From Phaeosaccion multiseriatum (Eukaryota; Protista; Ochrophyta, other classes), in assembly GCA_965112735.1 (NCBI GenBank), contig OZ218951.1, positions 4,216,001 through 4,280,000 of the forward strand: 64,000 bases of DNA, written 5' to 3'. A model generated the notes under the pieces. It saw nothing but the letters and a program-made list of their open reading frames with translations. It was not told the DNA's origin and did no database searches. Of this stretch, positions 25,860 through 64,000 are shown piece by piece. Made by a program: the position numbers and the translations under genes. Position 1 is the first letter of the stretch. Every line of letters starts with the position of its first letter.

Positions 25860-28795
25860 CTAGTGGGGAGCGCTGGGCTCAAATAGAGACATTAGTCCCT
25901 TGTAGCTGCCGCTACCGCTGCCAGACGAGCTTTTGTTGCCGCGGGCTAATGCTGCTCCCCCTCTGCTGCTGCTCGCCTTCTTGCCCCCCGGGGCCCCGGC
26001 CTCCCCCCGTTTGCCGACGACGTTGTTGTTGGTGCTTCGCGGTGTGAGGGACCCGCAACCCGCGGCTCGCGTTGGGGAGGCCGCAAGCGTGCAAGCAGAT
26101 TCCACACTTTCCTTCTCCCCGAGAGCGGCCTCGCACTGCTGCCTCATGGCCACCACTCGGAAACCGCACTCGTCCTCCTCCTCTTCTTCCACCTCCACCT
26201 CCTCCTCGTCGATACTACCGCTACTGCTTCTTCCGGCTGCTGTTGCTGCTGCTGTGTCACCAACTGCTGTATCACCACCAAACGCCCCGTCGCTGAAGGC
26301 GCTGCTCCCCCGCACGAGGGACGGCAGCAGCAGGGGCGACACCGGCACTTGAACTTTGGTGGGACTCCCGCCCGGCGTGAGTTGCCCCGTGCTGCCGCTG
26401 CTGGCGCCGTCGCTGGTCCCATCATCACACGACCAATTGGAGTTTGAGTTGGTGGAGGAGACAGAGTATGAAGTGTTGCTCATCTCCCTCTCCTCCCTGT
26501 CGGCAAGAGCCTTCATATCGAGCCAGCTCTTGGTGGCGAGGAGGTTGCCTGGTTCGATGTAGTCCCTCCTCACCTTGAGCACGGAGGGCGTGTCGGGCTG
26601 GGAGGGAGGGGCGGTGAAGGACACGGGAAGCTTGCTTTGTGCGCGGCGGCTGAAACTCACATTCTCCAAGGCGGAGTCTGTCTGCCGCCTCTGACCGTGC
26701 TGGTCCTGCTCCTGGTCCTGCTCTGGGTCCTCCTCTTCGTCCTCCTCCTCCTCCTCCTCCTCCTCCTCCTCCTCTTGCTGCTGCTGCTGCTGCTGCTGCT
26801 GCTGTATCACCAACTGCTGCTGTCCTCCATCACTCGACGCCTCCTTTCGGTCGCCGCAGAACCCGAAGCGCTTCTCTCCAGTGCGGGTGGGCGATGCCCC
26901 CTCCTCTCTCCCCTCGGTTGGGTATGATGGGTCTTCCTCCCCCTCCGTGGGGTATGAGGGCTCCTCTTTCCCCTCCGTGGGGTATCCCGATGGCCCTTCC
27001 TCTCCCTCCGTGGGGTCACCGTCCAGGCTGGCGCCAGCGAGACTCGCGCGTAACTCAGACTCAACACCCTCCTCCGCCTCTTCCTCCTCCTCCCCCGCTT
27101 TCTTCTCCTCTGTCGGCGCCCCTCCGCCCCCGCCCGCGTGGCCGCTCTCCCCGTCGCTGCTCTCGTCGTCTGTACTGTCGAGGTCATCGCAGTATACAGT
27201 TACGGCCCCAAGTGGTGTTCGTCCCTCCCCTTCCTCCTGCGTGCCATTGTCCATCCCCTTTCGCTCTGTGAGGTCCCTTGCTATGTGCTCTGCTGCCTCC
27301 TCTACCCCTCCTCTTCCTGCTGATGGTACCGCAGCCCCTGTTGCGCCCGTTGAATTCCCGCCATGGGGCCCAGCGTCCTCCTCCTCCTCCTCCTCCTCCT
27401 CCTCCTGAGCAGGGCCTCCTCCCAAGGCCAAATCGGACTGTGACTGTGCTGAGAAGAAGGTCTCCACTCCAGGGGCGGCGCTTCCTTCTTGGTACTTGTA
27501 CTCCGGCACGTCGATGGTCAAGCTAAGGCCCGCCTTCGAGCCACGCCCCCCTCTGTCAGCTGCTGTATCACCACCAACTGCTGATGCTACAGTTGCTGCT
27601 GCTGGCTGATGCTGTACCACCAACTCCTCCTGCTGCTGCAGGGGTGGCGGGGGCAGAGGGCTCGACGACGACGACGACGAAGAAGAAGAAGACAATGATG
27701 GTACTGACGTCGGTACCCCCTCTGGTGACAGTATTGGCGATGGAGGCACCCCTTCCGAGCCGACGAAAGCGAGCCCGTACTTCTCGAGCCAAGGGTGGCG
27801 AAGCATACGGCCCACGGAGAGGCGCTTGTTGGGGGCCAAGGCGAGGGAGGTGAGCAAGAAGTCGCAGAGCTCGGGCGAGAGCTTGGTGGGGAGGAACACC
27901 TCCAACGTGGCGATGCTCTTCGAAATGGCCGCCTCGAAGCTACTTGTGCAGCTCAGCTTGGGGTACTCGTAGGCACCCATCCACAGCCGGCAGTAGTCCT
28001 CATGGCCAAGGACGAGCTCGAGGAGGATGCAGCCCAGAGACCACACGTCGGCCTTCTTGCCGTTGTACGCGCCCTTGATGAGCATCTCGGGGGCAAAGAA
28101 GCCGGGCGAGCCGCAAAACTCTCTGTGTGTACGTAGCGGACGACCGGCTCTCAGGCACTCCGCCTCCTCCGCGTCGCTCTCCACCCGCGCAGAGAGCCCA
28201 AAGTCGCACAGCACCACCCTCGTCTGCGGCGTGAAGCGGTGCTTGTCGGCGAAGAGAATGTTCTCGGGCTTGAGGTCGCGATGGCACACCCCGTGCGCGT
28301 GTGCGTAGTGTACAGGGCGCAAAATCTTGTGCAAGATTTGCGCCGCCACCTCCTCGGAGACGCCCTCCAGGTGTTGATCAAAGAACTCAAACAAATCCCG
28401 CCCGGCCTTCTCCGTGATGATGTAGATGCACTTGGGGGCGTGGATCACTTCGCACAGCCGGATGATTCCGTCGTGGCGCAGGCGAGTGAGCACGGCAATC
28501 TCATTGTCCACGCGGCGCAGAGTGGTCATGCTCACTACCTCGCTCTTGTGGATCATCTTGACAGCCAGCTCGGCGGGCGGGTCGACTGCTGTTGCTGCTG
28601 CTGCTGCTGCTGCTGCTTGCTGCACTTGCTCCCGCCGCCGCTGCTCGTCGTCTTGCTGCTGCTTGCTACTCCTACTACCGCTACTACTACTGCTAATGCC
28701 ACCGCCCCCGAACAGGGTCGACCGCTGGGTCTGACGAGCGCTCTTCTCCCCGGCAGCGGCCACCTCACTGCCACTCCCACTACCACCGCCGACGC

Positions 28796-28826
<31 letters not shown>

Positions 28827-30246
28827 ACCAGTGCTACCACCGGTTGGCGTCTTCCTCTTGCGAATACCCCTCACCGCCGCGAACTGCCCCTCCCCGAGGG
28901 TGTCAAGCAAATCATAGTCGCCAACCCTGTCATCCTCCTCCACAATACTCTTGTCTACGGGGGGGATGGCCTCAAGCCATTTGGGGCCCATGCCCTCCAC
29001 CCCGGGGAGCGCCTTGGCCGGAATAAAGTCCCACAAGACGTCTCTGAGCTGGGCTTTGATGGAGTCGTACTTTTTGCGCAGTAGACAGAACTTGTCAAAC
29101 AGGGCCTTTTGCTGCTGATGGAAGGCGGCGATGGAGGCCTCACTCTCCGTGGCTACCACCTCGAGCTCGTGGATTCGGCGGTCTCTTCTTCGAGCCTCCT
29201 TCTTGGCCCTTTCTTCGGCAGAGTTGAGCTCCTTCTTGAGCGACGACACTTGCTCCTTGAGCTTCTGTTGCTCCGTTGCACTGTTGGGGTTGTAGGTTAG
29301 GTGGGAACGTGGGTGGGTGGATGGGTGGGTGGGTGAGTGGGTAAGTGGGTGAAGGGAGGGACGGAGGAAAGGGACGAGGAGGTTCGAAAGTGAGCAGTGG
29401 ACGCGACGAGAAGTATTGCACCTCTTCATCCCCAGTTGTCACTGCTCTCCAACCTTCCTTCCTTCCTTCCTGCCTTCCTTCCTTCCTTCCTTCCTTCCTT
29501 CCCTCCCTCTCTCGAGAGTACTGCCGATGGGAAAGAAGACGAAGGAAGAAGTCCCCCGCGACTAAAGCAAAAGACACCCACAAAGGCACTCCTTCCTTCC
29601 GCGTACCCTACCTTCGGTTTCCTCCTCCAAAGGCACTGGTGAAGGTGGAGGCAAAACCATCCCCCCTCTTCTCTACAAGTCGAACAGCGGCATCCACGAA
29701 GCCGCCCCCTCCACTTCCGGCCTTGGGATTGGGAGTCGTCTTGTCCATCTCTCCTCCTCCGTCTGGTGGTGGTAGCTTCATGTCCCGACCGCCGCTACCA
29801 CTACTTCGGCTGTCTTCTACTCTATTACTCGTTTTGTCAAAATGGCCTCCTCCCTTGGAGGCCTCCCAGTCTAGAACCAACGTCTCTACCTCAGCGATGG
29901 CCACCACCCCCGCCGTGTCTCCTCCCCCCACCCCGGGACAGCCCTTCGACGGCTTAGTGGCCATGCGCCTGGCCTCTTGAGGGGAGCTTGCCAGAGACAC
30001 CTGTAATGATATCGCGGGAAGGAAGCGGGACGACGTGAGAAGGGCGTGGGTCATCGGGGGGGGGGGTTACGCGTACAGAGACCGCCCGAAGACGATGGAC
30101 GGAGATGGCCTGCTGTTGCTGTTCTCCCTCTTTCTCTCTCTCCTCATAGAGCTAACCTTGAGGTCATTGTGCAGCCCCAGGGATAGTGCTTTTTGCAGCT
30201 GCTCCAGGGAAACGCCCTCGCAGCTGATTTGATAGCAGGAAGTCAT
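25860..30246 (-). CDS. Ser/Thr protein kinase (CAMK/SNF1-like) with N-terminal coiled coil and long low-complexity tail
   Basis: Exons (minus) 30246-30157 (tentative), 30000-29612, 29280-25860. Motifs: LGEGQFAAV, LAVKMIHK, HRDLKPENIL, DFG, CGSPGFFAPE, DVWSLG. Coiled coil EQQKLKEQVSSLKKELNSAEE. Confidence 0.9.
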
Positions 30247-32965: not shown

Positions 32966-33266
32966 ATGAGCAACGTCCCCCCGGCGCCACTCTTTGGAAG
33001 AGGAGAGGATGACGGGGCTGGAGGAGCGGGACAGGCGCCAGGTGCAGAGTCAAATGGACTGCCGGCCGCCGCGGGACACCCCGCTCTGGCCAAGTACATT
33101 AACATTGACGAGATATTCGCAGAGTGCTTTTCGAGTGAAGGCTCCGATTTGCTTGGGGCATCGTCCATGGAGCAGCTCATGGGACCAGCAGCAGCATCGC
33201 AGCAGCATCCTCAGCAGCAGCAGCCCCCGCAGCCGCTGCAACAGCCTGAGCAGCAACAGCAGCAGC

Positions 33267-33297
<31 letters not shown>

Positions 33298-34480
33298 GCA
33301 GCAGCAGCAGCTCCAGCACCAGCAACAGCAACGACAGCACTTACACCAGCAGCAGCAGCAGCTACTCCAACTCCAGCAGCAGCACCAGCAGCAAATGTAC
33401 AACGTGTCGCAGGGGCTGGCGGCAGACGGAGGCATGGGCCACTTAGTCGGGCAACAGGGCCTCATGTCCCTGCCCCCGCCCATGGGAGTCGCAGGAGTGG
33501 GAGGCGAGGCGGCAGCGCGGATGGGTATGGACGGACTGGGGGGCATGGGCGGGATGGAAGTGATGGGCGCGGCTTCTGCGCCGGTGCCTGGGATGGGTGT
33601 TGGGGTCGCAGGGGTGGGGGCGGGGGGGGGGCTCCAACGGGTTGGGAGCAGCGGCGGGGGCGGGTCCGGTGAAGGCGGAGGAGGAGCAGCAGCAGCAACA
33701 GGAGGAGGAGGAGCGTCTTCGGGGGAGGACGACAAAATGGGCGGCAAGATGAAGAGGGCACGGACGGGGGGGGGGCGCAACATGTCGGAGCAGCAGAAGC
33801 TGCAGAGGAGGGAGAGGAATAGGGAGCACGCCAAGCGCTCGAGAGTGAGGAAGAAATTCCTGTTGGAGAGCCTGCAGACCAGCGTTACTAGTCTGCAGCA
33901 GGAAAACGAGTCGCTGAAGAAGGCAATTCATGAGAATTTGGGGCCTGAGGCGGACGAGCTATTGACCAAGGCCCATGAAGACAGCCTCATTGCTTCCGAC
34001 CCGGACAAGGCGACGAGGGTGCTTGAGAATAAGGACTACAGTCTTGTCAAGGCGCTGCAAACGGCGCAGCAAAATTTTGTAATTACCGACCCCACATTGC
34101 CGGACAACCCAATCGTCTTTGCCAGCCAGGGCTTTTTGGACTTGACCGGGTATTCGTTATCGCAGATTCTGGGCAGAAACTGCCGATTCCTGCAGGGGCC
34201 AGACACGGAACCAAAGGCGGTGGAGAAGATTCGAAAGGCCATCGAGAAAGGGGTGGATGCATCGGTGTGTCTACTCAACTACTGTGCAGATGGCTCCACC
34301 TTTTGGAATCGGTTTTTTATTGCGGCGTTGCGCGACTCAGAGGGGAAGGTGATCAACTTCGTAGGGGTGCAATGTAAAGTGAGCGAGGGGCTTGCCAAGG
34401 CCTCTACTCGGAAACACGACGCCGGCGAGGAAGGGGAGGAGAGCGACATGGACGATATGGAGGACGAGGACGAGGTGTAG
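32966..34480 (+). CDS. AUREO1: Aureochrome blue-light-regulated transcription factor (bZIP + LOV), single exon, 504 aa
   Basis: bZIP RRERNREHAKRSRVRKKFLLESL followed by a LOV domain NFVITDPTLPDNPIVFASQGF...GRNCRFLQG with the photoactive Cys. N-terminal polyQ and polyG. Subclass assignment is from memory. Confidence 0.95.
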
Positions 34481-45935: not shown

Positions 45936-47233
45936 GAACCCTGACCTGCGCGGTTCTTGCGTGGGAAGGAAGGTGCAAAGGGTGTGCCAAGGCTGCGCAA
46001 GAGAGCCGCAGAGGTGGAACAAGTGGCGGCGTGGCGCCGCCGAATCCGAAGATCGAGACGCCATCTGTGAATAGAAGTGCGAGTTTCAGTTGGGAACGTC
46101 AAGGGGCATCGGGTGCCGTCCCCTGGCCATCCAAAAAGTCGTTACGTTTCTGGGACGCCATGGTAAGAGGCGTACTCGGAACGTCCAAAAACCCAAGGAC
46201 GTTCCGGGACGTTCGGACGTTCCCGGGACGTCCGAGCGGCGCCCGTCCGAGGCGCGTACATTAGACGGGTCGTGCTTTGGCCGAGAACGCGTGTGGACGT
46301 CCCCCGCACGGGCGCAAGTGGACGTCCCAGGGACGTGCGTGTGAGCCGGGTGGCGGAGGGGCGTGAAGCCGAGAACAGCGGGCGCGGTGTTTGGTTGGGT
46401 TTGGATAATACATTGACTTTCAAAACATCACACAGCGGTTGTGTACGTCCCTGGGACAGTACCGGGCCGACTTCCAGCCGGCGTGCTATCTGCTAGAATA
46501 CGAGCCGGCTTCAGCCGACGTGCTACCTGCTACCAGCCGGCGGCCAGTGGCGTGTTACTGGGCCCTGCGGGCCCGGTAGTTATGCTACTGGAAATGCGTC
46601 GGACCCACGTCAGGGGTTTGACAAGCCGCCTCTTGTCTCCCTTCCTTCATTTCGACATACGTCTCCGCGCCACTTTCTCTGCTTCATTCCGTGGGTGTTC
46701 ACTCGTCTCCTCTCTGTTGTCGCCTCTCCCTCCTCATACCACGCCAAGCTATGCTCTGCTGAGGCGGGGTTCGTTGTGCAGCCGGATGGGGGGGGGGGGG
46801 TGTTAGTGTATACTCATTCGTCTATGGTTGGGTCGTCATAGCCGTTGGGTCAGCTTCGCCGCGTCAGTCACTTCTTACCCCGCCAAATGTCCCAAATCCA
46901 CACACCTTCCATACACGTCGCTCTACTGTCCCTCCTCCGAACCCCTCTCTCTACCCTTTTCTCCATCCAGCCCGGAGGCGCCCTCTTTCGTCTTGGAGCC
47001 CTGCCTCGTCCGTCCACCCTCCTTTTGTTGCCTCCATGTTCGACTGTCGCCCCCCGTCCCGCCCAGCTACTCCGTCGAACCTCCTCACCTCTTGCTCATG
47101 GACGGGCGGAGTCTATGTCGGCCGCCAGCGTCTGTGGCCTCGGTGTGGGTCGGGGTTCAAGGAGAGACGGGGGAGGATCTCCATGGCAGCTGCGTCGATA
47201 GCCGGCGCAGAAGGGCCCATGATGAGGATGTAG

Positions 47234-47340
47234 TTGGAGCCGATCTCCATGGAGTATGTGGAGACGGCCCACCAGGCGGCAGACATCTTGACCAACAACC
47301 TGGGCACTGCTGCCCTCCCACCTACCTGTCTGCGGTGCCT
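47234..47340 (+). pseudogene. Fragment resembling the C-terminus of Ty1/copia RNase H, nested in the TIR element
   Basis: ISMEYVETAHQAADILTNNLG resembles the copia I.LEYV.T..Q.ADILTK.L motif. An in-frame TAG lies just upstream and there is no RT. Confidence 0.5.
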
Positions 47341-48865
47341 GGATCGGTCCTCTCCAAAGCCAAGGAGGGAGATCAGCTCCTCTGTCTCTCGGAGCTGGAG
47401 CAGAACCGCACCAACGTCGGAGTGCTGCAGTACATCAGCGGAGTGTGCCGACCGGGGGTATGCTCCAGCTCCGAGAGAGAGAGGAGCTGATCTGAGTGAG
47501 GGTGCGTGGGGAGGAGGGGTTATTCGTGGGCACCTTCTGTTAAAATACTTCAGCCGGGAGACCTCGCTTCTCCGCGCACTCTCCTACTCCTTTTCTCTCC
47601 TCTCTCCACTCTATGCTGCTCGTCCTCGCCCGCCTGCCCCTCTCGCTCCGCTCTCACTCCCCAACCATCCCTCCGTACCGCCATCATCCACCATGCCTAT
47701 CCCATACTTCTCCCCAAACAACCCTCCCGCCCGTGCACTCTCTTTCATCGCAGGTCCTCTCCCTTTCGCACTCCCTGCCCCCTCTCATCCCCAAAAACTC
47801 CCCTCTTCTTGTTCCTACTTTTGGGTCTCCCCCTCCCTACCCTCCCCTCCCTCTTCGTCAAGTCCGGCTACTCCGTCCAGCCTCCTCACCTCGTGCTCTG
47901 AGACGGGCAAGGCCGATGACGGCCGTCAGTGGCTGGTCTGCGGCTTCAGCGTGGGAAGGGAGTGCAGCACAGGCGGGGGAGGGAGGGTGTGGGGGTGGGC
48001 GAGGAGGAGGTCAGTTTTGGACACTCGCCTCCTACATAAAAATACTACGGCAGGCAGACATCGCGTCTCCACACACCCTGTCCCGCCCTCTCCCAACTGT
48101 CAATGCTACTGTCGTCTTCGCCCCCCATCCCTTCCTCTCCCCACCCTCACCCTCCGACCGTCCCTTCCTCTCTCCGTCACCCACCACACCTGGCACCTGC
48201 TTCCTCCAACCCGCCCATCCGCCGTCTGTTCCCTCTTTCGTCCCAAGTCCTCCATCGTTCGCGCTTCCTGCCTCCTCCCGCACTCAGACCATCCACTCTT
48301 CCCTCATCACCTTCCTCTCCACGACACTCTCGCCTCTCCCCCATCACCCTTCCTCCTCTTGTCCCTCTGCTTACCCCCCCCCCCCCCCCTCCCCTTCGTA
48401 CCGATCCGCCCCGGAGGAGGGTGTCATGTCGCCGCGCCCCCGCTCCCTAACCCATCGCCTCTCCTCCGTCCACCGGCTTTCTCATGCGCGTGTCCATCGT
48501 GCCGCCCCTCCCCCGTAGTATCGGCTGCTGCCTACTCGGCTCCCCGCATCAAACTTGCTTCTTCCCGTCACCCACCACCATCACCCGGCCCTCCCTCTTC
48601 GCCCTCTCTCCTGCCTCTCTATCGGTAGTGCGTACATCTTGTGGCCCCTGCACTGGACTCGCTTTTCGCCGTTGACGATTATTGGCTTGAAAAAAAAGGA
48701 GTAACGGTATTCTAAGAGTAATACCACCCCCCCCCCTTCATACTTTTCCTGCTTGCTTTCATCACCATGAGCGACGGTGACGGTGAGTCTGAGGGGTGAT
48801 TCCATAATGTCCCGCCCCTACTGTCGCCTCCATGAACGCCACCTCCGTACCTAGCCACCTGCCTC

Positions 48866-50732
48866 TTGCCCGACGCTACGGGACCTCCACCCCTGTTGGC
48901 TGTTGAAATGAACCTGATCACAGTGCTGTTGCCGTTGCTGCTGCTTGCTGTTGGTGTTGCCAGGCGAGGGGGTCCAGGCTACAGTCCACCCTCTGGCGAT
49001 GAGGGGGCCGACGGCAACGGAGGAGACTGCATCTCCACACCCCTCCGACAGGGCGTTTTTGATCCAAGAACTGCAGCTGCGCTTGAGGCAGTGATTGACG
49101 CAGCCAGAGCCAGACTGGATGATATTGATGAGAGGGCCCGCTTTTCCGCCGCCATGAGACAACAAGTTTCGGCGCTGGATGGGAATCAACTCAGGGGAAC
49201 CGCCCTCTGTGGCGCAAGGGCAGCGTTACGTACACTCCCCCGCGCATACACGGAGGAATCGACTTCGCCCGAAAGGCAACCAGACCGGCAGGACGTGGGA
49301 TCAGAATATCTTTAGCGAGGATGGAGAAATGGGCCAATCTTCATGGTGAGGGAGGGCATGAGAGATAAGGAGGGATGATCAGACTGCGCCCGCCCAACCG
49401 CGCCTGTGCCCACTTCCCATACATCACACTAACCGGTACCACTCCATGCCCCCCCCCCCCCCCCCCCCCTTTCCTCGCGCCTCCGCCACAGTTTTACCAA
49501 GGGCTACATCAGAATCGGTATCGAGTCGGCCAGCAATACAGCAACTCGGATGGGCGTCCAATCGCGATGTTTAGATGTACTCCCGTGTCAACCCGGTTCA
49601 ATGGAGGTGAGTAGGCCAGGCGTGCAGGGCAGGGGCACATATGACAGGGAGCGAGAAAGCATGTTTAGACCGAAGCAGGAGACGAAGATGTGGAACATGA
49701 CGTACTCACCCAACTCCGACTCCCCGCGCCCCCCCATTCCCGCCGCCTCCCGCCCCCGCACATGGCAGACGACCATAACACATGTGATACATTTGACGAT
49801 TAAGGAGCCACGGAGATGCCCGAGACTCCTGTATAGGCACTCCAGGCCCTGTGTGACGATTTCATAGCCACGGATCAACCCGACATTGATCCAAGTGCAC
49901 TCCAGGGGGGGCCAGCACCCACCAACTCCGGGGGCAGACCCCACGAACTGTCGCCCCACCCCCTCGCGAGACCTTCTCCTTCGACTAAGGACGAAGAAGG
50001 AAGAGGAGGACAGTCGTCCACCGACGAGGGGAGCGAAGACTTGGGAGTTCCGTGTCTGAGAAGGAGAGCGACAGGGGGCGCCCAGCCATCCAGCGGGACG
50101 AAGGGGGGGGTGGCAACGCAGGCCTCCGTCTTCCACCCTCCGGGCCGAGGCCAGAAGGGAAATGACCCCGAAGCAAGGCGAGACGACAGCGAAGGAACGA
50201 GGGAGGGGAAAGGAGCTGCAGCAGCAGGCGGCGGGGGGGGGAGGCGGAGGAGTCGGATACGGAGGACGAAGAGGTCTCCGTGAAGTTTCGAACATCGGCC
50301 GAGGATACCAACACAAAAGCTCCGCCGGCCGAGAAGCAGCGCAGGGGGGGTAGGCAGAAAGGCAGTGAGGAGCGGGGAGGAGCCGTGGGAGAAGCGCATG
50401 AGCCACGTGAGAGGCGGGCTCGTCTCAGAGGAGATGATGGACCAAACTCGGATACACCTCTCTCTTCTCTAACCTCCGGCCCCAACGCGAGAAGACAGAA
50501 GAGGACAGGCGAGCAGCAGCAGGAGGAGGGGGCGGAGCACAAGCGGGCGAATACGGCCGGAATGGGGGCAGGGAAGGAGAAGTTGGTGAAGGCCAAAAAA
50601 GTTGGGAGCAACAAGCGCAGGCTTTCCAAGGTCAAGCCGGCCCCCGAACCCACGGGCAGGAGGAGGCAGCGGCGAGCGCCCCAGCGGTTCCGTAACGGAG
50701 CCCCTCTTCTCCCAGAAGACGAGAGCCGCTAA
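48866..50732 (+). pseudogene. Degenerate spliced cargo gene of the TIR element (helical N-terminus, disordered acidic/basic middle); homologous to the Sae2-domain gene in copy 2
   Basis: Putative exons about 48866-49343, 49491-49606 and 49769-50732, with in-frame stops TAA 49801 and TAG 49834. 49960-50732 aligns with the reverse complement of 62880-64000 (MTPKQGETTAKERGRGKELQQQA vs MTPKQSETPVKERGSGKELQQQA). Confidence 0.65.
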
Positions 50733-51261
50733 GCACGCCACTCACATCGGAACGGCAGTCGTAGACAGAGCACACTCTAACTTCGCCTTCCGCCTCGTAA
50801 GCAGTCTACTGCAATGCATACTAATATCAATTGTTCTAGTCTACACAATGGTCGTGGCACAGTCCACGCCGAGGTTGCGCCCCCACCTGAGGTATACAAG
50901 CACGTGCCTTCACCGACACGCACACACACACACACACGTACACGGCACGGACAAGGCCCAATGCACGTCCCCAGCACGCACGGCCAGTGGACGTCCGGGG
51001 TGCGTGCAGGACATGGTGGACGTACCGGGTACGTCCACCCTGTCCAAGGACGTACAGAGGACGTCTGGTTTTTCGGACGTCCCCCTCACGCCCCTGCTCT
51101 CACGGACGTCCACTGGACGTCCCAGATGGCACGTCCCAGAAACGTAACGACTTTTTGGATGGCCAGCGGACGGCACCCGATGCCCCTTGACGAATGAAAC
51201 TGGCATTTTATCGATTATCAGAGTGTGTTTGCAAAAAAGAAAAGCAAAACAAGCAAACAAG

Positions 51262-53183
51262 ATGGAGGGATCAGATGGTTTTTTGCGACAAGGAGTGGAG
51301 CTAAGTCTAGCCTTTAGACCGATCGTCTCAATTCCAGGTGGGATCTCTCCAAAAAGGAAGGAAAGTAATTGCAACGACCGTGTGGCCCCATCCGTTCGCG
51401 CCTCGCTTCTTCTGTCTCATTGTCTCTCGTCTCTCATCTTCACGCCCCTCTCGCTCTCTATCACTCTGACTCATCATCATAACACGTGTCCCCCTCATTC
51501 AGGTGATCTTGCAGCACGGGAGGGGCGAGAAGTGGAGCTCCTGAATCTAACCGAGTGCGAGCTGGCCAACTATCATAACTTGCACCACTTTTGTAGGCTC
51601 AAGACACTGGTTCTCGACAAGAACAACCTCTCCGATCTGCAGGTAAGTCTTCTCTCTCTCTTCCCCCCCCTCTCTGCCTCTCTCTGAAGCTCTCTCTCTG
51701 TGTGTGACTGTGTGTGGGTGTCTCTCTCTCTCACGCTCTCTCTTCCCCTCTCCCTCCCTCCTCTCTCTCTCCGTCGCACTTCTTTTCTTCTCTCGTCTTC
51801 TCTCTCCCCCCCCCCCCCCTCTCTCTCTTCTCGCGCTGTCTCCTCCTCCCTCACTCTGTGCCATGTCTACTGGTGTCTCCCACCCATTCCCCATCCTCCC
51901 CCTGTCCCTAACCACAGAACTGCCCCAGCATGCCGAGCGTGAGCACTCTGTGGTTCAACAACAACTGTATCACCGACCTGGCTCCCTTCATGGACCAAGT
52001 TATTGAAAAGTTCACAGGGCTTACGGTGAGTCAGCTAGACTGTCTGCCCGTCGTTCAGGAGCATCAGCCAGGAGCGCCCCACCGTTTATCCGCCGATGGC
52101 TTCGACCGATGATTCCGCACCACATTCCATGCACTAGAGTTGCATACCTTGAGTGGTGCTGCTCTGCTGACGTGCCATGTCTCCCGTCCAACCCTGTGCT
52201 GCTGTCCCACCCACTGCTGAACCGCCTAGCTCCTGCCGTATCAACCAACCGCTGCTACCCCGTCTACTGCTGTTGTTCTCTGCTCTCTCCACTAGGAGCT
52301 GTCCATGATGCGGAATCCGGCCTGTCCGGGTCTGATGGACATTCAACAGCCCGACCTCGAGGCATGTCGCCTGTACAGACTGTACGTTGTGTACAGAATG
52401 CCCCAGCTGAGGGTAGTGGATGGCAACGACGTTACACAGGAGGAAAGGAAGGTACGGCTCTTGTGTCGACGACGGAACGGGACGACGCGGGAACTTGTTT
52501 GATCAAGTGCGCCCTGCTTAGAGGCTGTGTGAGACTGTGTGTGCCCGTTCACCTTGACTCGTGCCCCGACCCTGTGACTATGACCTTGATCCTCCACCTC
52601 TGACCCTGACCCTGATCCTTATCATGATCGTGACCGTATGTTTGGCTGTCTGCTCAACTCCTTCTCTGTATGTGTGTTCAGAATGCCAAGCTCAGAGGGC
52701 ATTTCGCAGTCAAGAGGCGGGTGCAGGAGGTGTATCAGCCCAAAACAAAGGTCTGAGAGTGGAGTCATGCATAGCTTTCTTTGCACCGCCTTGCATCTGC
52801 ACACCAGTGGCTCGACACTCGCCCTCCAAGTACATTGATTGCTTCTTTCGCGCATCTTGTCTCCATCGCTTTGAATCATCTGCTTGCTGCTGGCTCTGAC
52901 TGCTCTTCTTTTTCTCGCCTCTACTTCTCCTCCGGGTAATCCCACTCCTGGTTACTCCTACTGCTGCTGCTCCCATTTGCTGGACACCCAGGTGGGCTTC
53001 TTCGAGCGGGCGCCGTCGACAGTGTTCGACCCGCTCGGAGTCACCCCCGCCGCCGACGTCGCCGCCTACCACTCACCGCGCAAAAGCGTGACCCACGTGC
53101 ACTTCACCAGCAGCAGGAGGAGGGCTAGGGCGGACGGACGGCACAGTGAGGGCAACCGATTCATTCAGGACGACCACTTGTAG
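51262..53183 (+). CDS. LRMDA: LRMDA/C10orf11-like small leucine-rich repeat protein, 6 exons
   Basis: Exons 51262-51337, 51503-51642, 51918-52026, 52296-52451, 52682-52750, 52992-53183. LKTLVLDKN, TLWFNNN, LSMMRNPACP, YRLYVVYRMPQLRVVDG (LRR cap), and the C-terminal HSEGNRFIQDDHL typical of the family. Confidence 0.85.
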
Positions 53184-53806: not shown

Positions 53807-54258
53807 TCGGCCCCGTGCACGCCTAGCGGCCTAGGCTCTAGGCCGCTCGGCCGCTCTAGGCCGCTCACTTTTCAGCCCTAGGCGGTCTATAGCCCGCCTC
53901 TAGGCAGGCAGCCTCCCAGTGACCGTGGGCGCGTGCGTGGTGCCGCCCAGCCAGTGGGTAGCAGCACACCTGTAGGCCTGCACTCCTCGTAGGGCCAGCG
54001 AGGCGGAAAGAGACAACACGAACCAAGTCAAGTCTACTCCTCCCTTTTCCTTAACATTTGCTTAAAACTGACGACACTTGGGCGGGTTCCGGGCCAGCCC
54101 AGGGGCATACAGTTGGCGTCTCCCCTAGGCCGCGGGCCTCCGGCCCCCGCTTAGGCCGCCGTCTAGGCGGCCTACAAATAGGCCGAGGGCCTACGGCCCT
54201 CGCTAGGCCGGGCAATTTTCCAAAATAGGCCTAGGCCGCTAGGCGTGCACGGGGCCGA
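53807..54258. mobile_element. 452-bp MITE with perfect 30-bp TIRs and 7-bp TSD CAAAGTC
   Basis: TCGGCCCCGTGCACGCCTAGCGGCCTAGGC at 53807-53836 and its exact reverse complement at 54229-54258; CAAAGTC at 53800-53806 and 54259-54265; many internal CTAGGC repeats. Confidence 0.93.
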
Positions 54259-54362: not shown

Positions 54363-54396
54363 CAAGGGGGTCTAATATGAATATTAGACCCCCTTG
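54363..54396. repeat. Perfect 16-bp inverted repeat with 2-nt spacer; candidate TIR-only mini-transposon
   Basis: CAAGGGGGTCTAATAT-GA-ATATTAGACCCCCTTG, flanked by CTATGAT and CTATGAA (6/7 direct repeat). Confidence 0.75.
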
Positions 54397-60808: not shown

Positions 60809-61304
60809 ACGCCGCGTTGCAGACAAACCTTGGTCTTTGGTTGGCCTAAAAGTAATGGTTGGGCGGGGGAAAATTATTGACTTAAGAGGAATCACCTGAG
60901 AAACTGAAACTGAAAGTGTGTGTGTGGGTGTAAGTTTATGGGTAGGACATCGACATTTTAATTCGGGACTGTGGGCGGGAGGTTATCGGGTCAGTGACAA
61001 GGCCGTGTAGTAGGCAACAGGGATAAGGATAAAGGACATACAGGACATTGGGACAAGGGGAAGGACAGGACATCATTTGAGAACTCCAAGATATATAGAT
61101 AACCTCCCGCCCACAGTTAAACCCAAAGTCGACCCTCTCGATACCTAATGTCGATGTCCTGCCCATACACCTACAGTAGACTTGGCTGGGGGGGAGGTCG
61201 ATCGCATCATCCCAGGCTTTTGACCGCGGGCGTACGGCGCTCCACAAAGCCTCAGTAAGCGCAACATAACATAACATAACACAGAAGTTCATCAGAAGTT
61301 CATC

Positions 61305-61606
61305 ATCCAGCAGCTGCTCTCAGCCGGTGCGGAGGTCGACAAGAAGGCGGTACTGCCTTACTGCGGGCCGCGCAGGAACAAGGGCATCATGCAGTGGCGT
61401 AGTAACTGCTGTCGGCCGGCGCTGATCCCGACCACGTGGATGGCAGAAATGTTGACGGCCGCACCCCCTTGATGATGGCTTCAAAGGACGGAGACCACAA
61501 GATCACGCAGCTGCTGCTCACCTCGGAGGCAGATACGAATTTGAGAACCTGCGACGGAGTGTTTCCGCTTTTTTTTGCCAGCAAGAATGGGCATACTGTT
61601 ATATAT
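61305..61606 (+). pseudogene. Ankyrin-repeat pseudogene fragment
   Basis: IQQLLSAGAEVDK / GTALLRAAQEQGHHAVA**LLSAGADPD / GRTPLMMASKDGDHKITQLLLTSEADTN / GVFPLFFASKNGH, with stops TAG-TAA at 61400-61405 and a frameshift near 61345. Confidence 0.8.
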
Positions 61607-62428: not shown

Positions 62429-64000
62429 CGTCAAGGGGCATCGGGTGCCGTCCGCTGGCCATCCAAAAAGTCGTTACGTTTCTGGGACGTCCCGTCGGGG
62501 ACGTCCGGTGGACGTCCCTGAGAACAGTGGTGTGAGGGGGCCGTTCGAAAATACGGACGTCTTCCGTACGTCCGCATTTGTGGTGGACGTCCCGGGGACG
62601 TCCACCATGTCCGGCACGCACCCCGGACGTCCACTGGCTGCGCGTGCTGGGGACGTGCACTGGGCCTTGCCGTGCCGTGTACGTGTGTGTGGGGGGACGG
62701 GGGGGACGGGGGGGACGGTGAAGGTGTGCTCGTATACCACAGGTAGGGGCGCAAGCTCGGCGTGGAATGTGCCATGACTTAGGTGTGGACTAGAAGAATT
62801 GATATTAGTATGCATTTCAGTAGACTGCTTGCGAGGCGGAAGGCTCTGTCTACTACTTCCGTTCCAATGAGTGTTGCGCCTTCTGGGGGAAGGGCTGCGG
62901 TACCGTTCGGACGGTCGCCGCTGCCTCTTGCTCTCCGCGGTCTTGGGGCCCGACTTGACCTTGTAATATGGCATTTCGGTGGGGTCGGTCTTGTCGAAGA
63001 AGAAGGAGTCCTGCTTGTAAAGTCGCCACCGAGTATTGACGGAATGGCTCTCCTCTTCTCGTTCCTCCACCTCCTCAGCGAAGGACAAATCCCAGTACCC
63101 GTCCAGCGTATCGCTGAGTTCGTAGTTGCTGCGGTGCCTGCTGCACTTGTTCAGATCGGCCGCGCGCAACAGTTGCCAGACCTTCCTTCTCGAGCCAGTT
63201 ATACCACGGGCGGCAGACCTCGCAGTCCCACCTGGGAAGCTCGCGCCGCTCCTCCTTGTTGCGCACCACTTCTCCTTCCCTTTCCCCATTTCTGCCGTAT
63301 TAGCCCGCTTGTGCTCCACCTCCTTCCTCCTGCTGCTGCTCGCCCATCCTCTTCCTTCCTCTCGTGTTGGGGCCGGGGCGTTTGGGGGTAGGAGAAGGGG
63401 GGGGTGTCCGGGTTTGGTTCATCATCTCCTCTGAGACGAGCCCGCCTCTCCTGTGGTTCATGCGCTTCTCCCGCGACGCCTCCCCGCTCCTCGCTGGTCT
63501 GTGTGCCTTTCTGCCTATCCCCCTAGTGCTGGTTCTCTCCCCTCTCCCTCTTCCTGGCCGGCGAAGCTCCCCTTGTGCTGAGTCTCTCCCCTCTCCCTCT
63601 TCCTGGCCGGCGAAGCTTTGGTCTTGCCCCCCTTGACCGATGCGCTCTCGTTAACGGAGGCCTCTTCGTCCTCCACGAAGTCGTCATCCTCCGTATCCGA
63701 ATCCGACTCCTCCGCCTCCTCCCCCACCGCCTGCTGCTGCAGCTCCTTTCCGCTCCCTCGTTCCTTCACCGGCGTCTCGCTTTGCTTCGGCGTCATCTCC
63801 TTTCCGACATCAACTCTGAGGGTGGTAGGTGGAGGCCTGCGTTGCCCCTCCTTCGTCCCGCCGGGTGGCCGGGCTCCGTCACCACCCCCTGTCGCTCTCC
63901 CTGTCCAACGCGGACGTCCCAGGTCTTCGCTCTCCCCGCCGTCGGTCTACTCTCCTACTCCATCTTCTTCGTCTTCAGTCGGAGACGAAGGTGTCGCGAG
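62429..64000 (-). mobile_element. Second, inverted and diverged copy of the TIR transposon (right end; continues beyond the window)
   Basis: 62429-62489 is identical to the reverse complement of the right TIR 51132-51192. It is followed by the GGACGTCC array and sequence homologous to 49960-51130. Confidence 0.92.
63080..63272 (-). pseudogene. CtIP/Sae2/COM1 C-terminal domain within the transposon cargo gene (frameshifted)
   Basis: VVRNKEERRELPRWDCEVCRPWY in one frame plus LNKCSRHRSNYELSDTLDGYWDLSF in the adjacent frame match the CtIP pattern VVRKKEERRKL...CxxC...Y...CSRHR..Y....TP..FW...F. Confidence 0.85.

Follow-up and report, generated by a model that had tools for sequence, protein, structure and literature searches.

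Academ-RecQ and Helitron-RPA elements are transposons with DNA-metabolism accessory genes, and Transib/RAG elements leave flanking hairpins. Pack-TYPE elements have TIRs and host-derived interiors and lack a transposase (PMC6379663). The CMCT clade includes Transib/RAG, and PlavakaB elements have CATCA ends and a TSD of 2–3 bp (PMC12730594). In the host protein CtIP, CxxC...RHR is the conserved C-terminal motif, and a CDK site (T847/S267) lies directly after RHR (10.1101/2023.08.05.552090). A single change in CxxC or in RHR is enough to eliminate clipping by S. pombe Ctp1 (PMC4551917), and yeast without Mre11 or without Sae2 does not recover after Ac/Ds excision (PMC3299998). No CtIP/Sae2-bearing transposon was found in the literature searched, which had most subscription journals and Repbase Reports outside its scope.

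The locus described here lies in a 64,000-nucleotide stretch of the Phaeosaccion multiseriatum genome (the window), which is eukaryotic, has a GC content of ~58%, and contains microsatellite-rich introns. It harbors what is probably a Pack-type non-autonomous cut-and-paste DNA transposon, mobilised in trans, whose ancestor captured a CtIP-like gene that has since decayed neutrally. Self-BLAST of the window located a 61-bp terminal sequence three times, at 46097, 51192 and 62429, where none is expected by chance. The first two are mutually inverted and bound copy 1, a complete TIR element of 5,096 bp (46097–51192, plus strand). Its left TIR (46097–46157, plus strand) starts CGTCAAGGGG and is 98% alike to its right TIR (51132–51192, minus strand, by self-BLAST). 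The third is the right TIR of copy 2 (62429–62489, plus strand), an inverted copy that continues past the window edge. The element termini are CGTCA..TGACG, and the boundary is fixed because the base preceding CGTC differs at all three ends. The motif GGACGT/ACGTCC has 41 matches in the ~850 bp of the three ends versus 20 in the other 63 kb. These matches form a left subterminal array in copy 1 at 46181–46450 (12 matches), a right GGACGT array in copy 1 at 50965–51136 (14 matches), and a GGACGT array in copy 2 at 62485–62656 (15 matches). The ORFs of copy 1, the complete copy, contain no Pfam transposase domain, and the far part of copy 2 lies beyond the window; both copies are predicted to be non-autonomous 5-kb elements.

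The element probably belongs to the CMCT clade (CACTA/EnSpm-Plavaka), as suggested by the short TSD, by the subterminal arrays, and by the PlavakaB ends, which are one transition away. Membership falls short of demonstration because no transposase was found and because the element ends, despite subterminal repeat arrays at all three in the window, depart from the 5′-CA..TG-3′ rule of most CMCT members. Autonomous CMCT elements encode a DDE transposase with C(2)C and H(3-4)H motifs, and the TSDs of the clade measure 2–5 bp. The TSD itself is read from AA dinucleotides at 46095–46096 and 51193–51194 (both plus strand) on either side of copy 1. It is probable rather than proven, and only suggestive, because two flanking bases would agree by chance with a probability of 0.07 and a single insertion is concerned.

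Several further features lie in the left part of copy 1. An internal hairpin at 47370–47493 has 38-bp arms (92%), a 48-nt loop, a folding energy of −88 kcal/mol and a z of −9.9; it has no Rfam match, and may represent either a very small element nested in copy 1 or the precursor of a small RNA. A direct duplication of ~125 bp (47055–47176 and 47856–47982) has 72% identity. An exon-like, stop-interrupted stretch at 47197–47490 (plus strand; …MEYVETAHQAADIL…CLRC…) has no Pfam match and may be another cargo in decay or what is left of a transposase.

The CtIP-like sequence is found on the minus strand of copy 2, 650–845 bp inward of the TIR at 62429, as two peptides, EVVRNKEERRELPRWDCEVCRPWYNWLEKEG (63272–63180) and, one frame from it, LNKCSRHRSNYELSDTLDGYWDLSF (63154–63080). 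The original prediction had assigned both to Sae2/CtIP and had proposed the Pfam SAE2 profile (PF08573) as a check. Searched separately, the first peptide matches profile positions 4–39 (19.1 bits, E 0.003) and the second positions 79–105 (22.4 bits, E 3e-4, exceeding the gathering score of 19.8). The two matches are colinear along the profile, and the assignment is borne out. The first half of the domain (63180–63272, minus strand) contains EVVRNKEERR and the CxxC motif (CEVC, 63224–63213), and the second half (63080–63154, minus strand) contains CS-RHR (RHR at 63139–63131) and DTLDGYW (63112–63092). EVVR.K.ERR, CxxC, RHR and aromatic-W occur in the correct order, at the C-terminal end of a largely disordered ORF. 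The TP..FW motif also claimed for this peptide actually reads T-L..Y-W, the CDK-site TP after RHR being TL in copy 2 (ACG CTG; DTLDGYW). The missing S/T-P site alone does not disqualify a CtIP identity, since S. pombe Ctp1 also lacks the CDK site (10.1101/2023.08.05.552090). A basic tail after the domain (62885–62966, minus strand; KVKSGPKTAESKRQRR...) is common to copies 1 and 2.

CxxC and RHR are both present in copy 2 but not in one reading frame, as a +1 frameshift (63171–63187, minus strand) separates the two SAE2 halves; it is common to a sister subfamily of ~4 copies. Indel errors had been considered possible at 63270 and at 63170–63185, and contigs from the reads show that both indels are genuine. 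A single-copy contig spanning 63142–63272 has 0 differences and 0 gaps, on which an assembly error at 63270 or 63171–63187 was rejected, and a sister-subfamily contig at ~4-fold depth has the same frames as copy 2. A small intron restoring the frame was also rejected after all GT donors and AG acceptors had been read, none of which works without deleting the CxxC/RHR context, as was a programmed frameshift between the halves, no slippery heptamer having been seen.

At the upstream edge of the domain, copy 1 reads GAGAAGTTGGTG at 50577–50588 and copy 2 is without one T, and the flanks share one frame in each copy, all in line with what had been reported. The proposed restoration of that T, which would repair KLVRNK, is not required: the upstream cargo of copy 2 is already in register with the CxxC frame. 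That frame reads GEQQQEEGGGAQAG*YGRNGEREGEVVRNK and is continuous from GEQQQEE to EVVRNK but for one TAA codon, which is GAA in copy 1; in the sister subfamily the in-frame reading is ...KEVGEREGEVVRNKEERR, and the Pfam SAE2 match starts at the E of EVVR. Because the CxxC frame of copy 2 and the Pfam match already run into EVVRNK, the T-less state is plausibly ancestral, and would be at least as likely to be so as the state with T. Two single-base indels ~55 nt apart, which offset each other, distinguish copy 1 from copy 2, and the T at 50583 lies at the rearranged deletion junction of copy 1.

Upstream of the SAE2 domain, the cargo of copy 1 can be divided into three putative exons on the plus strand. 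Exon 1 (48767–49345) begins at ATG 48767, is interrupted by stops at 48797 and 49313, contains a helical stretch at 49058–49190, and is delimited by splice consensus only. Exon 2 (49492–49606), equally a prediction, has a CAG acceptor and a GTGAGT donor and no Pfam match. Exon 3 (49769–50732) would encode a disordered acidic/basic region with stops and frameshifts, has the SAE2 domain deleted at 50589–50629, and ends at TAA 50732. That these exons were spliced together is inferred from the GT-AG-bounded pieces. The corresponding cargo of copy 2 (63273–64000, minus strand) is ~82–85% identical to that of copy 1 and contains stops at 63300, 63515 and 63947; in addition, 67 nt are duplicated in tandem and several indels change the frame. 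The helix at 49070–49190 had been proposed as a CtIP N-terminus, an identity that gained no support: the region 49046–49312 gave weak generic coiled-coil matches only, with no match to Pfam CtIP_N or to CtIP/Ctp1 in the PDB. Of the suggested ancestral spliced CtIP-like protein, the N-terminal helix is thus left unsupported, while the SAE2 domain was probably present in the common ancestor of several copies, because the sister subfamily has its first half and copy 1 a weak junction remnant (p 0.01–0.05).

The sister subfamily and the other copies outside the window were recognized in Logan contigs from four runs of one sample, none recorded as RNA, aligned at a likeness of at least 80%; depth ratios from these contigs are rough, and contig filters leave holes. 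Across the four runs, single-copy contigs reach depths of ~55, 56–73, 520 and 100, respectively. A contig at ~3x depth skips 62844–63268 and matches the letters of copy 1 exactly (at 30 substitutions and 1 gap, agreeing in 19 of the 19 rows listed), and the copy-1 type comprises about three near-identical genomic copies without SAE2. The sister contig, at ~3.5–5x depth, covers 63131–63287 with seven substitutions relative to copy 2 and no gap, and represents about four copies carrying only the first SAE2 half. These share the frameshift and the T-less state of copy 2, have CxxC changed to SxxC (SEVC), and depart into CAG/CTG-rich sequence directly after RHR. They join 63744 to 63287 via 19 letters, and their upstream ORF is thus in frame into EVVRNKEERR. 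The segment after RHR is seen in copy 2 only, because the region 62958–63075 is at single-copy depth in all four runs, and among the contigs aligned at at least 80% likeness both SAE2 halves occur together only in copy 2. A further variant at ~2x depth skips 62766–62885 and has different subterminal sequence, and a single-copy variant of 63321–63436 is also found in the read contigs.

The subfamily contigs at ~3x and ~4x represent multiple dispersed copies with differing interiors, and the summed depth at the TIR, a rough measure, suggests some tens of ends, with several distinct flanks at the TIR junction. The claim that the transposon family carries SAE2 thus needs qualification: the domain does reside in a multi-copy TIR element, but most of the sufficiently similar copies lack part or all of it. 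The ~4x sister contig was rejected as the host CtIP gene, being multi-copy and having both the SxxC change and the same frameshift. No host CtIP contig aligned on the RHR–FW half at 80% likeness, and contigs 82–87% alike did align elsewhere; an older capture, short host exons or filtered contigs may account for its absence.

In copy 1, ~300 bp including the SAE2 domain are replaced by ~40 bp (50589–50629). The junction is weakly similar to the start of SAE2 (NK...RRLSK versus NKEERRKLPR), with a shuffle p of 0.01 against the sister letters and 0.05 against copy 2, and has short microhomology to the far breakpoint. An SAE2-like remnant and microhomology are what a deletion would leave, so that loss of the domain from copy 1, rather than its insertion in the other copies, is modestly favoured. 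The opposite polarity, in which copy 1 retains the ancestral state and the lineage of copy 2 and the sister subfamily alone gained an SAE2 piece, by another capture into unrelated cargo, appears quite improbable in the face of these two features of the junction. It would account for the fact that copy 1 is the more distant copy (~18% versus ~4.5%) and reads through the junction in one frame, and for the upstream exons matching no CtIP N-terminus. Such a late insertion would be compatible with neutral capture.

The cargo appears to be evolving neutrally in the copies seen. Over 189 aligned codons, copies 1 and 2 have 24.2 synonymous differences versus 27.7 expected under neutrality, as simulated with the same transitions and transversions, and omega is ~1.2, against ~0.9 in shifted-frame controls; most of these codons belong to the disordered region, which evolves fast even in a working CtIP. 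Within SAE2, all seven changes between copy 2 and the sister subfamily are non-synonymous, an outcome with a P of 0.004 at an omega of 0.2 and of 0.21 under neutrality; one of the seven destroys CxxC. The TIRs, meanwhile, are 98% alike versus 82–85% for the interiors. Conserved ends around a neutrally drifting interior are what a non-autonomous element would be expected to show. The original prediction had offered two options for the gene, a working accessory factor or a Pack-type captured gene. The first is contradicted by the disruption of all visible copies, only one of which has both SAE2 halves, and by the omega of ~1.2; the second fits best of the two with this disruption and neutral divergence. 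On the available sequence, no visible copy would be able to make an intact Mre11-Rad50 activator.

A partly active product of copy 2 could nevertheless be imagined, encoded by a stop-free frame (63418–62477; ATG 63289) in which two offsetting frame changes garble CxxC and keep RHR...YW, the Rad50-binding, Mre11-activating peptide. The frame runs for 314 codons, yet 15 of the 3,012 stop-free stretches in the GC-rich window are equally long. In it, four of the seven differences between copy 2 and the sister subfamily are silent, but the odds that three of these four fall in one codon position are about 1 in 9. For S. pombe Ctp1, the C-terminal 15 residues can stimulate Mre11 even when CDK phosphorylation is absent (cited in 10.1101/2023.08.05.552090). 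The RHR...YW peptide, however, is found in one copy only; it is missing from the sister subfamily, whose upstream ORF continues into the other frame, and no run containing the stretch is recorded as RNA. We consider this product very improbable.

It is also conceivable, and in our judgment rather unlikely, that the CtIP-like gene was a true accessory gene, the second ORF of an autonomous CMCT-like ancestor, and that the 5-kb elements are its decayed deletion derivatives. Through activation of host Mre11-Rad50, its product would have opened excision ends that were hairpin-capped or blocked by protein or, alternatively, would have steered the ends into homologous repair from the sister chromatid, restoring the donor copy. 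The cargo does resemble a complete gene filling the right half of the element, with SAE2 C-terminal as in CtIP. The ancestor shared by copy 1, copy 2 and the sister subfamily probably already had it, and no close host CtIP donor is found among the contigs aligned. The requirement for Mre11 and Sae2 after Ac/Ds excision in yeast (PMC3299998) makes such a role plausible, and the CMCT clade includes Transib/RAG. Against it, no copy at a likeness of at least 80% is intact, omega is ~1.2 with none of the seven SAE2 changes synonymous, no transposase remnant was found in copy 1, and no relative was found in protein, viral or metagenome searches, a weak argument for short pieces. The more specific proposal that an autonomous CMCT-like algal lineage with CGTCA ends once kept, or still keeps, a CtIP-like gene recruiting host Mre11-Rad50 to excision sites seems unlikely. 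If true, it would constitute a transposon-encoded resection factor, of which no description was found in the literature searched. An intact, selected, element-borne CtIP, if found, would be a case of a DNA transposon activating the host break-resection nuclease and steering the repair of its own excision sites.

Neutral capture, the reading we prefer, would proceed as follows. A transposase from an autonomous relative elsewhere in the genome would bind the conserved TIRs and GGACGT arrays and move the 5-kb elements. An ancestor would have captured a CtIP-like gene as DNA, to judge from the intron-like GT-AG stretches that it still contains, and the cargo would then have been carried along without selection, decaying independently in each lineage. 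One lineage (the copy-1 type) would have lost the SAE2 domain by deletion. The other would have acquired the +1 frameshift between CxxC and RHR and then split, the copy 2 branch gaining the TP to TL change and upstream stops, and the sister branch the change of CxxC to SxxC and the replacement of its second half by CAG/CTG-rich sequence. Repair of excision breaks would be left to host factors. Counting against neutral capture, the donor gene is not found among contigs aligned at 80% likeness, the cargo has the appearance of a single entire gene and not of a patchwork of gene pieces, and omega derives mostly from the disordered region, the SAE2 test comprising seven changes. Counting against the Pack/CMCT assignment, the 2-bp TSD is seen at one insertion and the window contains no autonomous partner.

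Copy 1 occupies a short gap between two apparently divergent genes (46064–51262), its left end 33 bp from the minus-strand ATG 46064 (weak HAD-hydrolase match, E 0.25) and its right end 70 bp from the plus-strand ATG 51262 (LRR-like exons by eye). The TIR of copy 2 is 81 bp upstream of the minus-strand ATG 62348, and these positions near ATGs hint at a preference for promoters. Elsewhere, the window contains a protein kinase ORF of 1,189 aa (25860–29429, minus strand; Pkinase E 1e-48) and an aureochrome-type ORF with bZIP and PAS/LOV domains (32966–34480), the mark of a probable ochrophyte host. It also contains a 452-bp MITE (53807–54258) with perfect 30-bp TIRs (TCGGCCCC…GGGGCCGA) and the 7-bp TSD CAAAGTC, and a palindrome (54363–54396) with perfect 16-bp arms and a 2-nt spacer that starts CAAGGGG like the element TIR core. 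A MITE-like element of 247 bp (60929–61175) has TIRs of 29 bp (90%) that enclose a perfect inverted repeat of 20 bp, and an ankyrin-like coding fragment lies near it at ~61490–61600.

Searches with the cargo and SAE2 pieces found no homologue among proteins, cluster representatives, phages, viral contigs, metagenomes or the PDB, or by exact look-up; their power was low, as the query pieces are short and length limits exclude full-length CtIP. The top match in the ESM Atlas, at 0.89, was below a useful level. TIR matches in one metagenome contig (L001) and one viral contig (L002) were rejected as isolated chance matches of 21–23 bp.

As it stands the locus reveals no new mechanism, and its CtIP-like gene seems to be cargo that was captured, not a functioning aid to repair. 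It adds a probable gene capture from outside plants, the host being an alga. The cargo is unusual and the CMCT-like ends are non-canonical, which makes the element useful for transposon classification. The cargo resembles CtIP/Sae2/Ctp1/COM1 (PF08573) in having EVVR.K.ERR, CxxC, RHR and aromatic-W in order at the C-terminus. It differs in being split by a frameshift, in reading TL at the T847/S267 equivalent, in showing, among weak generic coiled-coil matches, no recognisable N-terminal tetramerising coiled coil, and in evolving, apparently neutrally, inside a transposon. Like Academ-RecQ, Helitron-RPA and the TET-bearing fungal transposons (PMC12730594), the element has a host-type DNA-handling gene inside transposon ends; in those systems, however, an intact gene accompanies a transposase or replicase, and in the present element all copies seen have a disrupted gene. 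PlavakaB (CMCT; PMC12730594), some families of which carry a host-interacting accessory gene (TET/JBP), has 5′-CATCA ends one transition from CGTCA and a 2–3 bp TSD. PlavakaB was described from fungi and is defined by its transposase, whereas none was found here, and the TIR here is 61 bp. Pack-CACTA/Pack-TYPE elements (PMC6379663; reviewed in PMC13317346) differ in their CACTA rather than CGTCA ends and in a TSD of 3 bp where that of the present element is probably 2 bp; the algal host, the CtIP-like cargo and the lack of a donor contig at 80% likeness also set the present element apart. In common with them it has TIRs, asymmetric subterminal regions, an apparently gene-derived interior and no transposase found, together with recent copies, probably moved in trans, and internal deletions among its members.
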